The position numbers and the translations under genes are program-made. From Scyliorhinus canicula (lineage: Eukaryota): DNA of 64,000 bases. Below the pieces are notes generated by a model. It saw nothing but the letters and a program-made list of their open reading frames with translations. It did no database searches and had not been told where the DNA came from. The DNA lies in assembly GCF_902713615.1 (NCBI RefSeq), contig NC_052147.1:140991885-141055884 (forward strand), written 5' to 3'. How positions within the stretch are numbered: position 1 is the first letter of the stretch; each line of letters opens with the position of its first letter. This document shows, in pieces, positions 1,269-50,790 of this stretch.

Positions 1269-1815
1269 AAAAACCACATGTCAAGCTGACTTGTGCCAAG
1301 CTGGGCAGGGTTTTAAGCAGAACCACTAAACAAAGGAATGTAGCCAAGTAACAAAGCTGGAAGCTACCAGTAAGGTCACACCTCTGCTCAGTAGTAATTA
1401 TGCAGGTACAATGATGGAGCGGTTATCTTACTCGTGGACTAGTGATCGAGAGAATGGAGCCATTTCAGAATTTCTGCTCAGTTTAGTCTGAAAATTAAAA
1501 TCTAACAGTAAAAGTGACCATGCAGCTATTGGATTGCCATGAGAACCCAATCAGTCCACTGATGTCCTTTAGGGAAGGAAGGCTGCCATTTTTACCTGGT
1601 CTAGTCAGTCCCACACCATGACTGAAGCTTAAATTGCCTCTGAAATAGCTTAAGCAAGTCATTCAGTTGCCTCATTTCCTCAGGTGATGAGTAATAAATC
1701 CCAGCGTTGCAAGTGATGCTGAGATGGAATAAATTGGAACATGAGAAAACAGGTTTCCAGTCTTTAGAACAGTTCTATCACACAGACACCAAGTGATTAG
1801 TTAAGCTCAGTGACA

Positions 1816-1847
<32 letters not shown>

Positions 1848-2568
1848 AGAGAGAGAGAGAAGAGAGAGTATTGTGCTACGAGGTAATCTTCCAAGAGCTG
1901 GTTTAGGACTGCTCAGTGCCATTTACTACAGAACCCAAGCATGCAGAAGGGTCCAGGCTGGATTAAAAGGGTCCAACATCATGCAGTCCCTTCAAACACC
2001 AGATCCCACATATTAAAGTTTTCACTCAGTCTAACCTTTTTGAGAAGCCCGTTGATATTTTGTACAATGTGAACACACTCCCTTCCAAAAATAATTAGCC
2101 AGTCACTCCCTGAAGGCAGTTAAAACTTATCCTGGACACCATTTCTAATTTCCCTAATTAACCATCGAGCCGGACATTGTGGTATTGCACTTCCAACTCT
2201 GCCTGATGTCTATGCAACCCACTGCTTTCCCAATAGATCCCAATCCCTTTTTATTTATCACTTGTTCTTGTAGAACTCTCCAACTTACCTGGCACTGTCA
2301 TTCATCTCTGTGGCACACTCACTCACTCCCCTTTGCGCACCTGTCACAGATCAAAGGGAAATTAATTTTTACTCAATTCCGAGCCTTGTAATATTTTAGA
2401 TACAAATGCAGGTGCTGCCTTACATATTCTCCCATGTACAGTGGTCCCAAAAATTTCTGCTAACAGTTGGAGCATGGGTTTGTACGTGCACTGCCAACTC
2501 AACAAAACACTTCTATTAAATAATCACCCTTCATAACCTCAATGTCCCACAGTACAGATAATAAAGTA

Positions 2569-4479
2569 CCGTACTTTCCGGACTATAAGCCGCGACTTAT
2601 TTCACACGTTTCGAACCTCGCGGCTTATACAACGACGCGGCTTATTTATGGATTTTTCCCGCTTTCTTTTCACTAAACCAATGAAATTGCGTAACGGGTC
2701 AAGGTAAAACAATGTAACTTTTTAGTTTACTGTTTAGATTAAATCGAGCGCGCTCAAACATCCCATCATTCTGATTACGGTAGTCATTTTGTCACCCTCA
2801 TCATGGCAAAGACACGGAGAAATGCATATGATGCAGCTTTCAAGTTGAGGGCGATCGATCTGGCTGTTGGGAAAGGAAATAGAGCTGCTGCACTAGAGCT
2901 TGGTCTTAATGAGTCGATGATAAGACATTGGAAACAGCAGCGTGAGGAATTGACTCAGTGCAAAAAGACAACTAAAGCTTTCAGAGGGAAGAAAAGCAGA
3001 TGGCCCGAACTAGAAAATGAGCTCGAAGACTGGGTCAACATGCAGAGAGCAGACGGCCGAGGTGTTTCAACTGTACAGATCCGACTGAAAGCCAAAACAA
3101 TCGCCACCGCAATGAAGTTTGAGAATTTTAGAGGTGGACCATCGTGGTGTCTCAGATTTATGAGACGTAAAGGCCTGTCCATCAGGGTACGGACGAGTTT
3201 GTGTCAGCAGCTCCCTCCCGACTACGAGGAAAAAATTTCAAACTTCCGCAAATTCACTGATGCAATGATAGCAGAGCATTCCATTGGCCCACACAATATC
3301 ATAAATATGGATGAGGTTCCTCTGACATTTGACCTGCCTCTCACTCGGACTGTCAACAGGAAAGGTGAATCATCCGTCATGCTGAAAACAACTGGGCATG
3401 AAAAAACGCACTTCACCTGTGTTCTGAGTTGCACGGCATCGGGAGAAAAGCTTCCACCGATGGTGATTTTTAAACGCACGACGATACCAAAAGAAAAATT
3501 CCCTACAGGAATTGTTGTGAAAGTCAACAAGAAAGGATGGATGACGGAAAGCCTAATGCATGAATGGCATACGGAGTGCTACGGCAAGCGACCGGGAGGA
3601 TTCTTTCACAGGAACAAGGCATTGCTCGTTTTGGACAGCATGAGGGCCCACATAACAGATTCTGTGAAAGAAGCCATCAAGAGGACAAACTCAATTCCAG
3701 CTGTGATTCCTGGGGGCACAACAAAGTATTTACAGCCACTCGACATCAGTTTAAATCGTGCATTTAAGGTGGCGCTTCGTGTTCAGTGGGAGGCTTGGAT
3801 GACAAGTGGGGAGAAATCCTTCACTAAAACGGGCCGCATGCGAAGAGCAACTTATGGTCAAGTCTGCCAGTGGGTCCTGACAGCGTGGAGCATTGTTAAA
3901 AAATCCACTATCATCAACGGGTTTCGAAAAGCTGGATTGCTGCGTGTTGAAGAGGGCAGCATGAGCTCAGCGGGAAATTTGCCTCCGGATGAAAGTGATG
4001 AGAGCGACAATGAAAACAATCCAACATCGGATGAAGCAATTCTGAGGCTATTCAACTCTGACACTGAAGGAGATGACTTCAGTGGTTTCAGTGCACAAGA
4101 GGAGGATAGTGACTCTGATCACCTGGGTTGGTGATATCTTGATTACGATCAGTAATAAAATACTTCTTTTTACACGATTTATTTATTTTTAATGTTTCAA
4201 ACTGATGATTCTATGTTAATCTTAAGAGCTTAATCGGATTGATTTCGCTCCACAGTGACCAATGACTTTCTTGGTAGGCTATTCTTTACCGCTAATTTTT
4301 TATTTTTGTTACAAGCCGTATTTCGTTAAAGCCTGTGTAAAGCTCATTTGTTTCAATGTACCGGTAAGCACCTGTGGCTTATATACGTGTGCGGCTTATT
4401 TATGTTCAAAATAAAAAAAAATTCAAAATCAGTGGGTGCGGCTTATAGTCAGGTGCGCTTTATAGTCCGGAAAGTACGG
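2569..4479 (+). mobile_element. Full-length pogo-superfamily (Passer/POGK-like) DNA transposon, 1911 bp
   Basis: Perfect 20-bp TIRs CCGTACTTTCCGGACTATAA (2569-2588 and 4460-4479). TA duplication at 2567-68 and 4480-81. Subterminal GCGGCTTAT repeats at both ends and one transposase ORF. Confidence 0.95.
2803..4134 (+). CDS. pogo transposase, 443 aa: Brinker-like DBD, CENP-B/Tc5 HTH and DDE_1 domain with DD35D triad
   Basis: Uninterrupted ORF with motifs NMDEVP, LVLDSMRAH and YLQPLD. There are 35 residues between the second and third Asp, and an acidic C-terminal tail. Confidence 0.95.
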   Translation: MAKTRRNAYDAAFKLRAIDLAVGKGNRAAALELGLNESMIRHWKQQREELTQCKKTTKAFRGKKSRWPELENELEDWVNMQRADGRGVSTVQIRLKAKTIATAMKFENFRGGPSWCLRFMRRKGLSIRVRTSLCQQLPPDYEEKISNFRKFTDAMIAEHSIGPHNIINMDEVPLTFDLPLTRTVNRKGESSVMLKTTGHEKTHFTCVLSCTASGEKLPPMVIFKRTTIPKEKFPTGIVVKVNKKGWMTESLMHEWHTECYGKRPGGFFHRNKALLVLDSMRAHITDSVKEAIKRTNSIPAVIPGGTTKYLQPLDISLNRAFKVALRVQWEAWMTSGEKSFTKTGRMRRATYGQVCQWVLTAWSIVKKSTIINGFRKAGLLRVEEGSMSSAGNLPPDESDESDNENNPTSDEAILRLFNSDTEGDDFSGFSAQEEDSDSDHLGW

Positions 4480-5051
4480 TACTTGTTGAAGCAGTCGTTG
4501 TTGCAATGCAAGAGAAACAGCAGCTAATAATGTTCTCATAATAAGCAATGAGATCATTAACATTTTTTAAAAACGTGATGTTGGCTGAGGGATTAATAGT
4601 GTCCAGGGCACCCAAGTAGCAGGCTTCTGCTCTTCAGGCTTCTATCTATCTGAAGTGGATAACTGTCTTTCGCACATGTATCAATAGTTTTGCTGCTTGT
4701 ACACCTTGCCATGCACCAATTATCTAGGTTTCCTTTATTGCAACAATAATTACATTTGAAAAGGTTGTAAAGAACTTTGGGATGTCTAGTTCATGAAAAG
4801 CACAATATAACTGCAAGTTTTTAATGGTTTTAAACTGAATTCCTCATAAGCATAGATTAAATTTTATACTTGAACTCAATGCAAACTTCTGCTCACTGCC
4901 GGTTTAACAACTCTTCCAACTTACCACCCTCCTGAATCCCACACAATGCAGCAGTCAGTGCTGCGTGAGCCTGAGGGAAGTCTGTGTTGCCAGGTGGTGT
5001 GGACTTCCCTTTGGTTTATACACAGGGCATTCTTTTTTTTAATCTGACTGC

Positions 5052-5372
5052 ATGGCAGTACAGTGGTTAGCACTGTTGCTTCACAGCTCCAGGGTCCCAG
5101 GTTCGATTCCTGGCTTGGGTCACTCGAGTGGAGTTTGCAATGTCTCCCCATGTCTGCGTGGGTTTACTCCGGGTGCTCCGGTTTCCTCCCACAATCCAAA
5201 GATGTGCAGGTTAGGTGAATTGGCCATGCTAAATTGCCCCTCAGTGTATAAAAATGTTAGATGGGATTACTAGGATACGGTGAAGGCTTGGGCCTAAGTA
5301 GGGTGCTCTTTCCAAGGTTCGGTGCAAATTCGATGGGCCGAATGGCCTCCTTCGGCGCTGTAAATTCTATGA
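5052..5372 (+). mobile_element. V-SINE (HE1-like)
   Basis: A/B boxes, V-domain and tail; approximate bounds. Confidence 0.85.
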
Positions 5373-26444: not shown

Positions 26445-26817
26445 GGCGGGGTGGGGGGGGGGGGGGGGGGGGGGAGGTCGGGCAGGAGATGCGGAGGCCA
26501 GGGAGATCCTGTGTGGAAGGGAGGGGAGCGGGGTGTATGTGAAGTCCAGGCGGCGGGGGTGTGTGAAGGCCTGGGTGTTAAGGCGGGGGCGTGGAGAGGG
26601 TCGGGGGGGGGGGGGGGGGGCGTGGAGAGGGACCGGGGGGGGGGGGGGGGGGGGGGGGGATGGAGAGGGACGGGGGGGGTGTGGAGAGACGGGGGGGGGG
26701 GAGTGGAGAGACGGGGAGAGGGGGAAGAGGAGAGAGGGACGGAGGGGGGAGAGGAACGGGGGGGGGGGGAGGGGAGAGAGGGACGGGGGGGGGGGGGGGG
26801 AGAGAGGAGGAGGGGGG

Positions 26818-26854
<37 letters not shown>

Positions 26855-29800
26855 GAGGAGAGAGAGACGAGAGAGGGACGGGGGAAACACGGAGAGAGGG
26901 GGAGGGGGGGGGGGGGGGGAGAGAGGGGGCGGCGGGGGGGGGAGAGGGGGACGGGGGGGGGGGGAGGAAGAGGGGGACGGGGGGGGGAGAAGAGGGGGAC
27001 GGGGGGGGAGAAGAGGGGGAGGGGGGGGAGAAGAGGGGGACGGGGGGGGGGGAGAAGAGGGGGACGGGGGGGGGGGGGAGAGAGGGGGGACGGGGGGGGG
27101 GGAGAAGAGGGGGACGGGGGGGGGGGGAGAGGAGGGGGAGGGGGGGGAGAGAGGGGGAGGGGGGGGAGAGAGGGGGAGGGGGGGGAGGAGAGGGGGACGG
27201 GGGGGGAGAGAGGGGGACGGGGGGGGGGGGAGAGAGGGGACGGGGGGGGGAGAGAGAGAGGGGGGGGGGGGAGAGAGGGGGACGGGGGGGGAGAGAGGGG
27301 GACGGGGGGGAGAGAGGGGGACGGGGGGGAGAGAGGGGGACGGGGGGGAGAGAGGGGGACGGGGGGGAGAGAGGGGGGGAGAGAGGGGGAGGGGGGGGGG
27401 GGAGAGAGGGGGAGGGGGGGAGAGAGGGGGACGGGGGGGAGAGAGGGGGACGGGGGGGGAGAGGAGGGGGACGGGGGGGGAGGGGAGAGAGGGGGACGGG
27501 GGGGGGGGGGGGGGGGGGAGAGGGGGAGGGGGGGGAGAGGGGGACGGGGGGGGAGAGAGGGGGACGGGGGGGGAGAGAGGGGGACGGGGGGGGAGAGAGG
27601 GGGAGGGGGGGAGAGAGGGGGACGGGGGGGGAGAGGGGGGGGGGGGGAGAGAGGGGGACGGGGGGGGGAGAGAGAGGGGGACGGGGGGGGGAGATAGAAG
27701 TAGAGGGGACGGGGGGGGAGAGGTAGAGAGGGGACGGGGGGGGGGAGGAGAGAGGGGAAGGGGGGGGTGGAGAGAGGGGGACGGGGGGGGATGAGAGGGG
27801 GCGGGGGGGGGAGAGAGGGGGACGGGGGGGGGGACTTTTGATAGAGGGGGGGGACGGGGGGGGAGAGAGGGGGACGGGGGGTGGAGAGGGGACTGGGGAG
27901 GAGAGAGGGGGACGGGGGGGGAGAGAGGGGGACGGGGGGGGGAGAGAGGGGGACGGGGGGGGAGAGAGGGGGACGGGGGGGTAGAGAGGGGGACGGGGGG
28001 GAGAGAGGGGGACGGGGGGGGAGAGAGGGGGACGGGGGGGAGAGAGGGGGACGGGGGGGAGAGCGGGGGACGGGGGGGGGAGAGAGAGGGACGGGGGGGG
28101 AGAGAGGAGGGGACGGGGTGGGAGAGAGGGGTCGGGGGGAGAGCGGGGGACGGGGGGGGAGAGAGGGGGACGGGGGGGGAGAGAGGGGACGGGGGGGGAG
28201 AGAGGGGGACGGGGGGGGGAGAGAGGGGGACGGGGGGGGGAGAGAGGGGGACGGGGGGGGAGAGAGGGGGACGGGGGGGGAGAGAGGGGGACGGGGGGGG
28301 GAGAGAGGGGGACGGGGGGGGGAGAGATGGGGGGAGAGAGGGGGCGGGGGGGAGAGAGAGGGGGGACGGGGGGGGGGAGAGAGGGGGACGGGGGGGGGAG
28401 AGAGGGGGACGGGGGGGGAGAGGAGGGGGACGGGGGGGGAGGAGAGGGGGACGGGGGGGGAGAGAGGGGGGACGGGGGGGAGAGAGGGGGGAGAGAGGGG
28501 GACGGGGGGGAGAGAGGGGGACGGGGGGGGAAGAGGGGGACGGGGGGGGGAGAGAGGGGGACGGGGGGGGAGAGAGGGGGACGGGGGGGGGAGAGAGGGG
28601 GACGGGGGGGGAGAGAGGGGGACGGGGGGGAGAGAGGGGGACGGGGGGGGGAGAGAGGGGGACGGGGGGAGGGAGGGGGACGGGGGGGGGAGGGAGGGGG
28701 ACGGGGGGGAGGGAGGGGGACGGGGGGAGGGAGGGGGACGGGGGGGGAGGGAGGGGGACGGGGGGGGAGGGAGGGGGACGGGGGGGGAGGGAGGGGGACG
28801 GGGGGGGGAGGGAGGGGGACGGGGGGGAGGGAGGGGGACGGGGGGGGAGGGAGGGGGACGGGGGGGACGGGGGGGGAGGGAGGGAGGGGGACGGGGGGGG
28901 GGAGGGAGGGGGACGGGGGGAGGGAGGGGGGAGGGAGGGGGAAGGGGGGGGGGAGGGAGGGGGACGGGGGGGGGGAGGGAGGGGGACGGGGGGGGGAGGG
29001 AGGGAGATGGGGGGGAGGGAGGGAGATGGGGGGGGAGGGAGATGGGGGGGGGGGAGGGAGATGGGGGGGGGGGAGGGAGATGGGGGGGGGAGGGAGATGG
29101 GGGGGGGGAGATGGGGGGGGGGAGGGAGATTGGGGGGGGAGGGAGATTGGGGGGGAGGGAGATTGGGGGGGGAGGGAGATTGGGGGGGGAGGGAGAGGAA
29201 GAGGCCCGTGGGGGGGGGGGGGGGGGGGGAGGCCGTGGGGGGGGGGGGTGGGGAGGCCCGTGGGGGGGGGGGGGGGGGGGAGGCCCGTGGGGGGGGGGGG
29301 GGGGGGGGGGAGGCCGTGGGGGGGGGGGGGGGGGGGGAGGCCGTGTGGGGGGGGGGTGGGGAGGCCGTGGGGGGGGGGGGGGTGGGGAGGCCGTGGGGGG
29401 GGGGGGTGGGCCGTGGGGGGGGGGGTGGGGGGGGCGTGGGGGGGGGGGGGGGGAGGCCCGTGTGGGGGGGGGGGGGAGGCCGTGTGGGGGGGGGGGGGGG
29501 GGGGGAGGTGGGGGGGGGGGGGGGGAGGCCCGTGGGGGGGGGGGGGGGGGGGAGGCCGTGTGGGGGGGGGGGGGGGGGGAGGCCCGTGTGGGGGGGGGGG
29601 GGGGGAGGCCGGTGGTGGGGGGGGGGGGGAGGCCCGTGGGGGGGGGGGGGGGGGGGGGGAGGCCCGTGTGGTGGGGGGGGGGGGGGAGGCCCGTGTGGTG
29701 GGGGGGGGGGGGGGGAGGCCCGTGTGGTGGGGGGGGGGGGAGGCCCGTGTTTGGGGGGGGGGGGGAGGCCCGTGTTGAGGGGGGGGGGGGGGGGGAGGCC

Positions 29801-29950
29801 CGTGTTGGGGGGGGGGGGGGGGTGGGGTGGGGTGGGGAGGCCCGTGGGGGGGGGGGGGGGGGAGGCCCGTTGGGGGGGGGGGGGGGGGGGGGAGGCCCGT
29901 TGGTGGGGGGGGGGGGAGGCCCGTTGGTGGGGGGGGGGGGGGGGAGGCAG
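26445..29950 (+). repeat. ~3.5 kb compound G-rich minisatellite in EEF1B2 intron 1
   Basis: Successive unit types: GAGAGAGGGGGAC(G)n, GAGGGAGGGGGAC(G)n, GAGGGAGAT(G)n and GAGGCCCGT(G)n. Confidence 0.95.
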
Positions 29951-39122: not shown

Positions 39123-39951
39123 GTGGAAAGGGGGAAAAAAACGGCAGCAGCTCCCCAGAAAAAACAGGGGAAGGAATCCAAGATGGCGGCCGGTGGAGCT
39201 CCAGAGGAGTGGAAGCAGTGGGCCCTGGAGCAACAAGCTGCCCTCCTGCGCTGTTTTGCAGATTTCAAGGCTGAGGTACTGAGCTCTCTGCAGGAAACAA
39301 ACAAAAGGCTCTCAGAGATTCAGACCAGCCAGGGTGCTGCCATCAAGGAGTTGCAGACACAGGCCACTGAACGAGAGGAGGAGGCCGGGATCCTCGTGAG
39401 TAAGGTGGAGGGACACGAGGCACTCCACAAGAAGTGGCAGGAACGCTTCGAGGAGCTTGATCACCGCATGAGGCGGAAAAATCTGCGGATCTTGGGACTT
39501 GCGGAGGGGCTGGAGGGGTCGGACCTGACAACCTACGTGGCTACGATGCTGAACTCGCTAGTGGGGGCCGGATCTTTCCATCTGCCCTTGGAGCTGGAGG
39601 GAGCACACAGAGTACTGGCCAGGAGGCCTAAGGAGAATGAACCCCCGCGTGCGGTGCTGGTGAGGTTCCACCGGTTCAGTGATCGGGAGTGTGTGCTGCA
39701 CTGGGCCAAGAAGGTAAAGAGCAGCAATTGGGAGAATGGGGTCGTACGGATCTACCAGGATTGGAGTGCGGAGGTGGCTAAGCGGCGGTCCGGATTTAAT
39801 CGGACGAAAGAGGTGCTTTACAGGAAAAAGATAAAGTTCGGAATGTTGCAGCCCGCGCGCCTGTGAGTAACTTATTCGGACCGGCATTATTATTTGAATC
39901 CCCGGAGGAGGCGTGGGCCTTTTTGCGGACGGAGAAACTGGACTTGAACTA
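39123..39951 (+). pseudogene. L1 ORF1p (coiled coil plus RRM), premature stop near the C-terminus
   Basis: RRKNLRILGLAEG, AHR and IYQD motifs; TGA at 39864-39866 in LQPARL*VTY. Confidence 0.9.
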
Positions 39952-40649
39952 GGGGTTGGGGGTTGCGGGGTCGGTTATAATGCTTTATTGCTGGTTTCTG
40001 CTGTTGCTGTGTTCTCTTTTTTTTTGTACTTTTGCAATTTTGATGCGGTTATTTATGGGGGTGTTGTTCTGTTATGTTTTTTTGCTGTGGGGCATTGCTT
40101 GAGTTTTGTATCTTGCGGGGAGGGTTGGGGGGGTTTGTTGTATTCTATGTTGGGTTGGGGGTATGGAGTGGGGCTGGTATTTGGGAGCTGCGTCAGAAGG
40201 GTGTGGTGGGGCAGTGCGAAAGCGCGGGCTTTCCTCTGGTTTCCCGCGCTGCGGGGCTGGGGGGTGGAGACGATGACGGGGGGAGGCGGGGCCTTAACTG
40301 GTTCTTCCCCGCGCTGGAGCGGTGCCTGGAGGAGGGATAGATTGGGGGTTGATCCCACTTTGGGAGGGGTCGGGTTATTGGCGGGAGTTTCTGGGGTCAG
40401 CAGAAGTTAGCTGACCCACAGAAGTACAATGGAGGACGGTTCGCGGCTAGGAGGGTTCCTAGCCTGGGGGGGAAGGGAGGGGGGGAAAGGGGAATACCGG
40501 GTTGCTGCTGGCAGGGTCAGGAAGGAGCTGGTGGGGGCTGGGGGGACAGAGGAGAGGTGTTGTTGCTGTGGGGACTGGGTCGGGCAGGGGGTGCTGGCCT
40601 GGGGCGGGCAGTCGACAGGCTATGGCTAGTCGACGGGGGAGGGGGGGCG

Positions 40650-43600
40650 GGACGCCCTCTGATTCGGTTGGTCACCTGGAATGCGAGAGGATTGAATGGG
40701 CCGGTGAAGCGGTCGAGGGTACTTGCTCATCTGAAGGGGCTAAAGGCAGATGTGGCAATGCTTCAGGAGACCCACCTGAAGGTGGCGGACCAGGTCCGTC
40801 TGAGGAAGGGATGGGTGGGGCAGGTTTTCCACTCTGGGTTGGATGTGAAGAACTGGAGAGTGGCGATTCTGGTGGGGGAAAATGTGTTGTTTGAGGCATC
40901 GGAGGTCTTGGCGGATAAGGGGGGTAGGTATGTTATGGTTAGGGGCAGGCTACAAGGCGCGACGGTGGTACTTGCTAGTGTGTATGCACCAAACTGGGAC
41001 GATGCGGGCTTTATGAGGCGTATGTTGGGACGGGTCCCGGATCTGGAGGCGGGAGGTCTGATCATGGAGGGGGACTTCATTACGGTGTTGGATCCTTCAC
41101 TGGATCGGTCCAGCTCTAGGACGGGTAGGAGGCCGGCGGCGGCCAAGGTACTGAGAGGGTTTATGGACCAGATGGGTGGGGTGGATCCATGGAGGTTTGT
41201 GAGGCCGAGGGCACGCGAGTACTCTTTCTTCTCCCACGTACATAGGGTCTACTCTCGGATAGACTTCTTCGTGGTGAGTAGGGGACTGATTCCGAGAGTG
41301 GAGGAGGCCGAGTATTCGGCCATTGCAATCTCCGACCACACTCCGCATTGGATAGAGTTGGAGATGGGGGAGGTGCGGGACCAGCGCCCGTTGTGGCGGT
41401 TGGATGTGGTGTTGTTGGCGGAGGAGGAGGTGTGTAGGAGGTTCCGGGCAAGTATTGAGGGGTACCTCGAGGTGAATGATACGGGGGAGGTTCAGGTGGG
41501 GGTGGTCTGGGAAGCCCTGAAGGCAGTGATTCGTGGGGAACTGATATCCATCCAGGCACACAGGGAGAGGAGTGAGAGGGATAGACTGGTGGGAAAGATG
41601 CTGGAGGTAGACAGGAGGTATGCAGAGGCACCAGAGGAGGGACTGTTGGGGGAGAGGCGCAACCTGTAGGCTAAATTTGATTTGCTGACCACTAGAAAGG
41701 CGGAGGCACAGTGGAGGAAGACACAAGGGGCAGTGTACGAACATGGTGAAAAGGCGAGTAGGATGCTGGCTCATCAGCTCCGCAAGCGGGATGCGGCTAA
41801 GGAAATTGCTGGAGTGGGAATGTGGTGCGGAAGGGGGTAGAGGTGAATGAGGTCTTCAAGGACTTTTACGGGGAACTGTACCGGTTGGAGCCAACGGGGG
41901 AGAGGAGGGGAATGGAGAGGTTCCTCGACGGGCTTTCTTTCCCGAAGGTGCAGGAGGAGCAGGTGGAGGGGTTGGGTGCGCCGATTGAGCTGGAGGAGCT
42001 AGTTAAGGGGATCGGGCAGATGCAGTCAGGGAAGGCACCGGGGCCGGATGGGTTCCCGGTGGAATTTTATAAAAAGTTTGTGGACCTAGTAGGCCCCTTG
42101 CTGGTGCGGACACTTAATGAAGGGTGGGAAGGGGGGACTTTGCCCCCGACGATGTCGCGGGCGCTGATCTCGTTAATTTTAAAGAGGGACAAGGACCCCC
42201 AGCAGTGTGGTTCATACAGGCCCATATCTCTCCTCAACGTAGATGCCAAGGTGCTGGCAAAAATCCTGGCCACCAGGATAGAGGACTGTGTGCCAGGGGT
42301 TGTGCACGAGGACGAGACAGGTTTTGTGAAGGGAAGGCAGCTGAACACGAATGTGCGGAGGTTGTTGAATGTCATCATGATGCCGGCGATTGAGGGGGAG
42401 GCAGAGATAGTGGTGGCGCTGTTGCTGATAGAGTGGAGTGGGGGTACTTATGGGAGGTGTTGGAGAGGTTTGGATTTGGTGAAGGGTTCATTAGATGGGT
42501 AAGGCTGCTATATGAGGCCCCGATGGCGTGTGTGGCCACGAATGGGAGGAGGTCAGAGTACTTCCGGCTTTACCGAGGGACCAGGCAGGGTTGTCCCCTG
42601 TCCCCCTTGTTGTTTGCACTGGCAATCGAGCCGCTGGCAATGGCGTTGAGGGATTCAGAGAGGTGGAGCGGTTTGGTGCGAGGTGGGGAGGAACATAGGG
42701 TGTCGTTGTATGCCGATGAACTGTTACTGTATGTGGCGGACCCGGTGGGAGGGATGACGGGGGTGATGGAGCTGCTAGCTGAGTTTGGGACCTTTTCAGG
42801 TTATAAACTAAATTTAGGCAAGAGTGAGGTGTTTGTGGCACACCCTGGAGACCAGGAGGAAGGAATTGGTAGGCTCCCGCTTAGGCAGGCAGGGGAGAGC
42901 TTTAGGTACCTTGGAGTGCAGGTGGCCAGGGACTGGGGGACTCTTCACAAACATAATTTCACCAGACTTGTAGATCAGATGGAGGAGGAGTTCAAGAGGT
43001 GGGAACTGGAAGATAAATTTGGGCTTCCCCAAGGGAACATGTTCAGATACTTGCAGGTAAAGGCGTTTGCTAGGCGACAGGTAGAGGGATTCCCTTTGCT
43101 GCCCTCACGGGGGACGATGGACAGAGTGCTTTCGGGGGTGTGGGTCGGAGAGGGGAAGGTGTCTGACATCTATAAGGTAATGCAGGAGGTGGAGGAGCTG
43201 AAGGCCAAATGGGAGGAGGAACTCGGGGAGCAGATAGAGGACGGAACTTGGGCGGATGCCTTGGAGAGAGTCAACTCTTCCTCCTCATGTGCGAGGCTTA
43301 GTCTCATCCAATTTAAGGTGCTGCACCGGGCCCACATGTCCAGGACTAGGATGAGTAGGTTCTTTGGGGGTGAGGACAGGTGCACCAGATGTTCGGGGAG
43401 TCCAGCGAACCACGCCCATATGTTCTGGGCATGCCCAGCACTGGAAGAATTCTGGAAGGGGATGGCGGGGACGGTGTCGAGGGTGGTTGGATCCAGGGTC
43501 AAACCAGGGTGGGGACTCGCGATTTTTGGAGTTGCGGTAGAGCCGGGAGTGCAGGAGGCGAAAGAGGCCTTTGCGTCCCTAGTAGCCCGACGAAGGATCT

Positions 43601-43761
43601 TGCTACAGTGGAAGGATGCGAGGCCCCCAAGTGTGGAGCCCTGGATCAGTGACGTGGCAGGATTTATAAAATTGGAAAGGGTCAAATTTGCCCTGAGAGG
43701 ATCAATACAAGGGTTCTATAAACGATGGCAGCCCTTTCTGGACTTCCTGGCTCAAAGATAG
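40650..43761 (+). pseudogene. L1 ORF2p (APE endonuclease, RT, Cys-rich C-terminus), disrupted
   Basis: TWNARGLN, LQETH, SRIDFF, SDH, KAPGPDG, YRPISLLN, GTRQGCPLSP, YADE (for YADD) and CxxC..H..C. Several stops, frameshifts and an internal deletion. Confidence 0.92.
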
Positions 43762-49604: not shown

Positions 49605-49880
<276 letters not shown>

Positions 49881-50030
49881 TAAATTTGGAGTACCCACTT
49901 ATTTTTTTTCCAATTAAGGGGCCATTTAGCTCGGCCAATCCACCTAACCTGCACATTTTTAGGTTGGGAAGGTGAAACCCACGCAGACACCGGAGAATGT
50001 GCAAACCCCATGCAGTAAGTGATCCGGGGC

Positions 50031-50790
50031 CCTGTCCAAACCCAAACCGCCCCAGTACCTTCCACAAATACTCCCACTCCAGCCGGTCGAATAGCGACCA
50101 TTACCTCTGCCTCCCTCCCCTCGGAGGGCATCATGATTACATTCAAAAGCCTCCGGACGTTGGCCGTTAACTGCCTGCCTTTGACCAATCCCGTCTGGTC
50201 CTTCCCTATCACCACTGGTACACAATCCGCTATTCGCGAAGCCAAAATCTTGGCCAGCATTTTGGCTTTAAAATTTAGTAGGAAGATTGGTCTGTATGAC
50301 CCGCATTGTTCTTGGTCCTTCTCCCTCTTCAGGATCAATGAGATCGAAGCCTGTGACATTGTCGGGGGAACAACACTCAGCTTCCCTGCCTCGTTAAATG
50401 CCCTCACCAGCAGTGGACCCAGCACCCTAGAAAACATCTTATGAAATTCCACTGGGTAACCGTCCGGTCCCAGGGCCTTGCCCGACTGCATAGCCTCCAA
50501 TCCCTCTACTACACAATCCCGATCGGGGCACCCAGCCCCTCCACCAACCCTTCCTCCAACTTCGGAAACTCCAAACCCTCCAAAAATTGCCTCATCCCCC
50601 TCCACCCCAGCAGGAGGCTCCAACTCATACAACCGACTGTAAAATTCTTTGAACACCCCATTCACCCCGCTGGGTCCAAGACCTGTGTTTCCCCCCTCCA
50701 TCCTTCACTCTTCCTCTCTCCCTGGCCGCCTCCCTCTAACTGAGCTGGTGTGCGAGCATCCTACTGGCCTTCTCCCCATACTCATATACC

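Follow-up and report, generated by a model that had tools for sequence, protein, structure and literature searches.

Passer is one of the six families of pogo DNA transposons; almost all of its members encode a DD35D transposase, whose DNA-binding region consists either of the Brinker domain (BrkDBD) plus HTH_Tnp_Tc5 or of HTH_Tnp_Tc5 alone, and the family is the source of the host genes POGK and POGZ (PMC7386202). Passer elements are 1.6–4 kb long, encode transposases of 400–500 amino acids (aa) and have terminal inverted repeats (TIRs) shorter than 30 bp, with CCGTA tabulated for both ends and a TA duplication on both sides (PMC9976928). In human cells, the native stickleback and zebrafish elements show high activity, and integration there was measured to occur at the TA in the centre of AAGTACTT (PMC9976928). 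Passer counts among the few naturally active vertebrate DNA transposons, and its development into gene-delivery vectors is under way (PMC9976928; PMC11840574). Here we report on a 1,911-bp element of this family in the catshark Scyliorhinus canicula, located in a 64,000-nt stretch of contig NC_052147.1 (assembly GCF_902713615.1, positions 140,991,885 to 141,055,884), hereafter the window, to which all coordinates refer unless stated otherwise. An earlier note on this stretch had described Passer as the DD35D pogo family related to POGK, and a fish Passer as being active in mammalian cells with a AAGTACTT target; both statements agree with the papers just cited, the mammalian cells being human.

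The published survey distinguishes a type named ‘PasserC, ray-finned fishes’, represented by elements from Pimephales promelas (Pipr) and Salvelinus namaycush (Sana), both 1,819 bp long with 18-bp TIRs, the Salvelinus transposase having 439 aa (PMC9976928, Supplementary Table S1); the Pimephales TIR reads CCGTAATTTCCGGACTATAAGCCGCA. The survey counts six species of Chondrichthyes, one of them with an intact copy; the table names Leucoraja, two Chiloscyllium, Hydrolagus, Amblyraja and Pristis and no Scyliorhinus, and horizontal transfer is not discussed in that paper. A comparable case is that of Tc1 elements, which have been transferred between teleosts and lampreys (Kuraku et al. 2012, PMC3516227). 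Overall, our data are best explained by an autonomous PasserC-type transposon that was horizontally acquired, is young and is plausibly mobile, a reading to which we assign a probability of about 0.8.

An intact transposon in a palindromic target

The features of the element and its insertion site are as follows.

2564–2568, no strand: left target half-site AAG (2564–2566) and TA target-site duplication (TSD; 2567–2568), read directly
2569–2593, plus strand: left TIR, beginning CCGTA, its outer 20 nt (2569–2588) perfect against the right end
2620–2629 and 2637–2646, plus strand: two left subterminal motifs of the GCGGCTTATA type, inverted with respect to the copy inside the left TIR (2584–2593)
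2803–4134, plus strand: uninterrupted open reading frame (ORF) for a 443-aa transposase, from the ORF list and Pfam
3310–3312, 3634–3636 and 3742–3744, plus strand: codons of the catalytic triad D170, D278 and D314, from invariant alignment columns
4114–4253, plus strand: insertion of about 140 bp specific to the shark lineage, located at the 3' end of the ORF, from alignment with three teleost-type copies (L001, L004, L003) and a BLASTN gap at element positions 1547–1688
4374–4383, 4391–4400 and 4438–4447, plus strand: three right subterminal motifs of the GCGGCTTATA type, in direct orientation with the right TIR
4455–4479, minus strand: right TIR, its outer 20 nt (4460–4479) perfect
4480–4484, no strand: TA duplication (4480–4481) and right target half-site CTT (4482–4484), read directly

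Read directly from the sequence, the element spans positions 2569–4479 with a TA duplication on both sides, the letters across its ends being AAG TA, then CCGTACTTTCCGGACTATAA at the left, and TTATAGTCCGGAAAGTACGG, then TA CTT at the right. A repeat finder returned the same structure as two 30-nt arms (2564–2593 and 4455–4484) with 93% complementarity; each arm is composed of 5 nt of the palindromic target (AAGTA or TACTT) and a 25-nt TIR, in which 23 of the 25 positions pair and the outer 20 do so perfectly. In the window this 20-mer has just two occurrences, one per strand, where 0.01 would be expected by chance, and the boundary between TA and CCGTA is the same in four teleost-type copies. 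A search with this 20-mer found no other copy, no miniature inverted-repeat transposable element (MITE) and no solo TIR of the element in the window. The sequences flanking the element likewise have no second copy there, so that the window offers no paralogous empty site.

Joining the flanks restores AAG-TA-CTT, i.e. the published Passer target consensus. The full AAGTACTT context is found at only one of the 3,005 other TA sites in the window, its background frequency being 3e-4. A random insertion would thus hit it about three times in 10,000, so that the preference known from human cells is matched here independently by a natural event, as a single insertion and from a Passer branch other than the tested one. 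The structural claims of the earlier note, i.e. perfect 20-bp TIRs, a TA duplication, an uninterrupted 443-aa transposase with a complete DD35D triad and a reconstructed empty site AAG-TA-CTT, all hold on direct reading and in the analyses by repeat finder, ORF list, Pfam and alignment.

Both ends of the element carry a 10-nt motif, GCGGCTTATA, which matches seven times in the window against 1.26 expected, with six of the seven matches in the element ends (element positions 16(-), 52(+), 69(+), 1806, 1823 and 1870(+)). The same arrangement recurs in teleost-type copies: in L001 and L005 the left-end motifs lie at 16(-) and 52(+), with the one at 69(+) present only in L005; in L003 the first two are shifted to 18(-) and 54(+); and the distances of the right-end motifs from the terminus are identical in L001 and L004. 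By this conserved placement, the subterminal motifs are conserved cis elements, and they would be candidate binding sites for the transposase. Their internal layout differs between the ends, with direct orientation at the right and inverted orientation at the left, and between 2584 and 2629 the inner left TIR recurs in inverted form in the first subterminal motif, the two 12-nt arms matching perfectly across a spacer of 22 nt.

The transposase

Pfam assigns the protein a DDE_1 domain (3.4e-30) and an HTH_Tnp_Tc5 domain at aa 67–128 (2.4e-13). Within the first 70 residues HTH_Tnp_1 scores above its Pfam threshold, with a helix-turn-helix at aa 5–52, and the Brinker domain remains below threshold (20.3 against 23.4 bits, covering profile positions 3–53 of 58), the same stretch passing in relatives. 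Between the two DNA-binding motifs lies a basic stretch, KKTTKAFRGKKSR (aa 54–66), which by eye could be a nuclear localization signal. An RNase-H-like DDE core follows, and then a disordered acidic tail (aa 384–443). The 35 residues between D278 and D314 define the triad as DD35D, and in an alignment of 52 sequences, made up of the window protein and 51 relatives, all 37 invariant columns are conserved in the shark copy, the three catalytic residues among them.

A search by sequence alone detected no solved structure for the transposase. The AlphaFold2 model has a mean pLDDT of 76.5 with a low-confidence tail, and Foldseek comparison of this model with solved structures matches it over its full length with the Mos1 transposase in DNA complexes (E 7e-10), its core with the catalytic domains of Mos1, SETMAR and Sleeping Beauty (TM about 0.65–0.7) and its N-terminus with the DNA-binding domain of CENP-B.

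Two larger differences set the shark copy apart from its teleost-type relatives. The insertion of about 140 bp, which has AGTGAC at both borders and contributes an AATAAA at 4154–4159, replaces the teleost-type tail ...EEEDSDQ* by ...EEDSDSDHLGW*, a change that falls within the low-confidence tail of the model. In addition, about 75 bp of the 5' untranslated region (UTR) found in L001 and L005 are missing.

A PasserC-type element

The element displays the hallmarks of Passer, i.e. a DD35D triad in DDE_1, a TA duplication, TIRs below 30 bp with CCGTA ends and HTH_Tnp_Tc5. Within the family, its TIR differs from the Pimephales TIR, as well as from those of L001 and L005, at a single position (position 6, C for A, at both ends), the TIR of L005 being exactly the published Pimephales PasserC sequence. 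Because of this TIR identity and the conserved layout of the subterminal motifs, we assign the element to Passer in the pogo superfamily and, within it, to the short-TIR type ‘PasserC, ray-finned fishes’.

With the PasserC copies (Pipr, Sana, Salmo, Oncorhynchus and Lates) the element shares 88–95% protein identity, 93–95.6% nucleotide identity over the core, the TIR except for position 6, the GCGGCTTATA layout, the ORF start and blocks of the 5' UTR; it differs in its cartilaginous host, in the C at TIR position 6, in the insertion of about 140 bp with its poly(A) signal and in having about 75 bp less 5' UTR than L001 and L005. With the tested Passer elements (PS) of Gasterosteus aculeatus and Danio rerio (PMC9976928) it has in common a single ORF with a two-motif DNA-binding region and a DD35D core, the TA duplication, short CCGTA TIRs and insertion into AAGTACTT. 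It differs from them in several respects: relatives of 425 aa, as long as the tested transposases and possibly of their type, are only about 52–56% identical to the shark protein, the perfect TIR has 20 bp rather than the 28 bp of PS, the Brinker motif is sub-threshold and the element is 1,911 bp long. Counted by hand against the PS TIR in the primer table of PMC9976928, 22 of the first 25 positions are identical. In species and length, relatives at 55–57% identity correspond to PS entries of the published table (Leptobrachium, 446 aa; Fundulus, 427 aa).

Kinship with teleost copies

A word search returned 634 protein relatives, and 111 proteins were used for a maximum-likelihood tree. The named members of the closest group are all teleosts:

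Salmo trutta, 94.7% protein identity
Oncorhynchus kisutch, 92.3% protein identity
Oncorhynchus mykiss, 92% protein identity
Pimephales promelas, 89.6% protein identity
Lates japonicus, 88% protein identity

A search with the C-terminal 194 aa adds fragments from Scophthalmus and Perca to this group, and contigs from fish-associated assemblies reach 95% protein identity. Exact look-up of the 443-aa protein gave no match in the protein collections, inspection of all members of the three nearest 90% clusters showed none closer than 95.7%, and the C-terminal search for shark fragments returned nothing above 97%. For the Pimephales protein (P0135), no source DNA was located.

At the DNA level, five teleost-type loci match the shark element with 93–95.6% nucleotide identity along a stretch of about 1.45 kb that takes in part of the 5' UTR; the identity of the non-coding ends to those of teleost-type copies is 80–92%. 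Synonymous divergence (dS) between the window ORF and five teleost-type copies is 0.12–0.18, with a ratio of nonsynonymous to synonymous divergence (dN/dS) of about 0.2. Rather than following host phylogeny, the tree nests the shark copy among teleost copies: the window protein lies inside a clade of 15 rows with 100% support, whose named members are all teleosts, in a 111-protein tree that holds no outgroup pogo families (Tigger, pogoR and others). Within this clade it is sister to Salmo trutta (support 84), in a group of 14 rows that excludes Lates (support 93).

The lineages of cartilaginous and bony fishes separated about 450 Myr ago, and vertically inherited synonymous and non-coding sites would by now be saturated. 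Our baseline for shark–teleost host-gene dS is accordingly assumed to be saturated from the age of this split. Since low dS, alignable non-coding ends and a tree in conflict with host phylogeny coincide, horizontal transfer between the teleost pool and the shark lineage is well supported. Its direction is less firmly set; because the shark copy is nested among teleost copies, the economical reading would be a transfer into the shark, from teleosts or through the same pool as theirs. The earlier note had proposed that the element was horizontally acquired, and the teleost-only clade, the low dS and the identity of TIR and motifs with PasserC speak in favour of this.

Several observations concern the wider distribution of this branch. 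Proteins from the molluscs Littorina saxatilis (P0014 and P0023) and Octopus vulgaris (P0183 and P0197) are 60–71% identical to the shark transposase; in the tree, P0014 (71%) joins the fish clade to which the window protein belongs, and P0023 (60%) falls just outside. These snail and octopus relatives suggest a wide aquatic pool, and the placement of the snail proteins hints at a spread of this Passer branch across phyla. Several such proteins bear the database names ‘POGK’ or ‘Tigger-derived 7’ and look like transposon copies named as host genes. L001 (ENA ERZ922548, labelled viral metagenome) and L004 (ERZ1749594) are complete or near-complete PasserC copies on contigs of about 2 kb, and most likely represent host fish DNA carried over into these assemblies. 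The Lates japonicus copy (L003:2743–4532; GCA_041154345.1, BAABXA010000177.1) has an open 441-aa ORF and has lost the left CCGT terminus, with extra TIR changes, so that it is probably immobile by itself. The shark-type 20-mer TIR had no exact match in viral contigs; its two exact matches in metagenome contigs lie in GC-rich bacterial coding sequence without further similarity and were discarded as chance.

Selection, age and the state of the copy

Relative to five teleost-type ORFs, the shark ORF has 37 private changes, 22 of them synonymous and 15 nonsynonymous. The resulting private-branch pN/pS is 0.19 and departs from neutrality (p = 1e-6), under which about 3.5 nonsynonymous changes would be expected for each synonymous one. 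The 3' insertion accounts, through its effect on the alignment, for four of the nonsynonymous changes, and without them pN/pS drops to about 0.16 (95% interval 0.07–0.34). Pairs of teleost-type copies have ratios of 0.14–0.28, and pS on the private shark branch is 0.076. The pN/pS of 0.19 therefore means that almost the whole private branch built up while selection maintained a working transposase, and by our estimate from the 95% interval neutral decay since insertion accounts for at most about a quarter of it, i.e. roughly 2% divergence.

The observed-to-expected CpG ratio of the element is 0.88, whereas tiles of equal size across the window average 0.45 and have their 95th percentile at 0.70. 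The TSDs are identical, the outer TIRs perfect and all motifs intact. That the copy is young, as the earlier note had surmised, is thus well supported by purifying selection on the shark-private branch and by the high CpG content. On these grounds it appears to have every sequence feature needed for activity, and it is plausibly still able to transpose.

The strongest competing explanation is that the element is structurally intact and yet dead, i.e. a fossil that a short-lived invasion left behind in few copies, with a transposase put out of function by private changes or by the 3' insertion, and immobile in the catsharks of today. We regard this as a serious possibility that falls short of even odds, and a number of observations weigh on its side. 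Two private substitutions, R31L and R42H, hit fairly conserved positions of the first helix-turn-helix in the N-terminal region; K155M is also private, as is V317L, three residues past D314; the Brinker score is below the Pfam threshold; and the C-terminal tail is altered by the insertion of about 140 bp. Any of the private substitutions, the low Brinker score or the altered tail could reduce activity. The ORF contains 49 CpGs, fewer than the 56–63 in the intact teleost-type copies L001, L002, L004 and L005, and this deficit implies that some time has passed in a methylating genome. Finally, no second copy was seen, neither in the 64-kb window, where also MITEs and solo TIRs are absent, nor in the protein collections, which contain no shark-derived copy or fragment.

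Against an inactive copy, however, stands the quality of what has been preserved. All 37 invariant residues are kept, only two mild changes fall in columns with a conservation of 85% or more, neither the TIRs nor any subterminal motif is damaged, and the tail is disordered and variable across the family anyway. Moreover, with a private pN/pS of 0.19 most of the private changes arose under selection and are more probably lineage traits than damage.

Inheritance, domestication and assembly

Vertical inheritance from a jawed-vertebrate ancestor, or a domesticated host gene kept under selection, is very improbable. It is true that purifying selection with a dN/dS of about 0.2 would also be expected of a domesticated gene, and that Passer did give rise to POGK and POGZ, with which the element shares the ancestral transposase architecture (a Brinker-like domain and/or HTH_Tnp_Tc5 plus DDE_1). 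POGK and POGZ, however, are fixed genes of their hosts that lack TIRs, carry fused KRAB or zinc-finger domains and show no activity in transposition assays (PMC9976928), whereas the window element has TIRs and a TSD and no added host domain; domesticated genes lose TIRs, TSD and binding-site motifs, all of which are intact here. Furthermore, a dS of 0.12–0.18 and non-coding ends with 80–92% identity could not have been preserved if shark and teleost copies had descended independently for about 450 Myr, teleost copies surround the shark copy in the tree, and long-diverged teleost hosts also share copies with a dS of about 0.1 among themselves.

Sequencing runs of the host organism were consulted for the interval 1800–5300. 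Each of 14 runs, which come from 8 samples and 5 studies, holds 62–80% of the sampled words; with the element making up 55% and the flanks 45% of this interval, each run therefore holds part of both. Six metatranscriptome runs from fish or fish gut hold 10–17% of the sampled words, as expected from relatives of about 95% identity. That teleost DNA from prey or contamination was stitched into the shark contig is just as improbable as vertical inheritance, since, even if teleost-type copies do occur as stray contigs in fish-associated metagenomes and viromes, the element sits with a clean TA duplication inside a palindromic preferred target, differs by about 5% or more from all sequences found outside the host, is distinguished by a TIR variant present at both ends and by the 3' insertion, and is accompanied in host runs by more words than flanks or element alone could supply.

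Other sequences in the window

Fragments of long interspersed nuclear elements (LINEs) lie further downstream.

39123–43761, plus strand: fragmented LINE-like ORFs, with Exo_endo_phos at 40557–41669 and RVT_1 at 42433–43761
49829–50701, minus strand: fragmented LINE-like ORF with RVT_1

The earlier note had described every other coding transposable element in the window as decayed; this stands for the LINE-like ORFs at 39–43 kb and 49.8–50.7 kb, which are the ones that were checked. The reverse transcriptase ORF at 42433–43758 (442 aa) is most similar to a Scyliorhinus torazame protein (70% identity), all other matches listed having at most 61% and the named non-shark ones at most 51%; this best match points to a catshark as the host. 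The contrast between an old LINE with its closest relative in a shark and a Passer element with its closest relatives in teleosts lends further support to horizontal transfer of the latter.

The earlier note had placed the element antisense in a presumed ZDBF2 intron. Among ORFs of at least 110 aa between 711 and 21,800, outside the element, none has a Pfam match, which neither supports nor contradicts this context. Upstream of the insertion, positions 3–172 and about 1040–1151 of the plus strand share the translated pattern ...GFL.V.RFPPT.QR.AGW..., which suggests two copies of a repeat resembling short interspersed nuclear elements. At 26603–29944 there is a G-rich low-complexity tract of 3.3 kb, built from roughly 150 copies of units of about 20 nt of the GGGGGAGGG type, in which spurious ORFs arise on both strands, the longest with 1,207 aa; the long ‘ORFs’ at 26.4–30.2 kb were rejected as an exon for this reason. 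The tract could be a real G-quadruplex-prone sequence or an artefact of sequencing or assembly.

Implications

Taken together, these data suggest a coherent picture of how the element would work and how it may have reached the catshark. With the two helix-turn-helix motifs at its N-terminus, the transposase would bind the 20–25-bp TIRs and the subterminal GCGGCTTATA motifs, and its RNase-H-like site formed by D170, D278 and D314 would cut and join the DNA, with insertion at the TA inside AAGTACTT and duplication of this TA, as the present copy displays. The lineage most probably entered the catshark genome by horizontal transfer from teleost fishes, or via the same pool as theirs, and was under selection for a working transposase until shortly before the present copy arose.

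The transfer of Tc1 elements between teleosts and lampreys (PMC3516227) is similar in that a near-identical transposon of the IS630-Tc1-mariner group is found across a split of more than 400 Myr; it differs in that we deal here with pogo/Passer, with a shark as the recipient and with no evident ecological route such as parasitism. That Tc1/pogo-type elements pass horizontally between aquatic vertebrates is already known, and the catshark element is a new example of this process. It provides a well-preserved short-TIR PasserC member from a host class with one intact-copy species in the published survey, as well as clear sequence evidence that the PasserC branch has moved between ray-finned fishes and a shark.

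A bolder version can be put forward tentatively, and in our judgement would fail rather more readily than it would hold: a Passer lineage may have crossed recently from bony fish into the catshark and may still be mobile there, with several near-identical, polymorphic copies and with ends and a transposase that work in vertebrate cells. If true, the catshark genome would supply a short-TIR vector of the PasserC type that is active by nature and targets AAGTACTT, and would document a dated transfer of a transposon from bony to cartilaginous fish.

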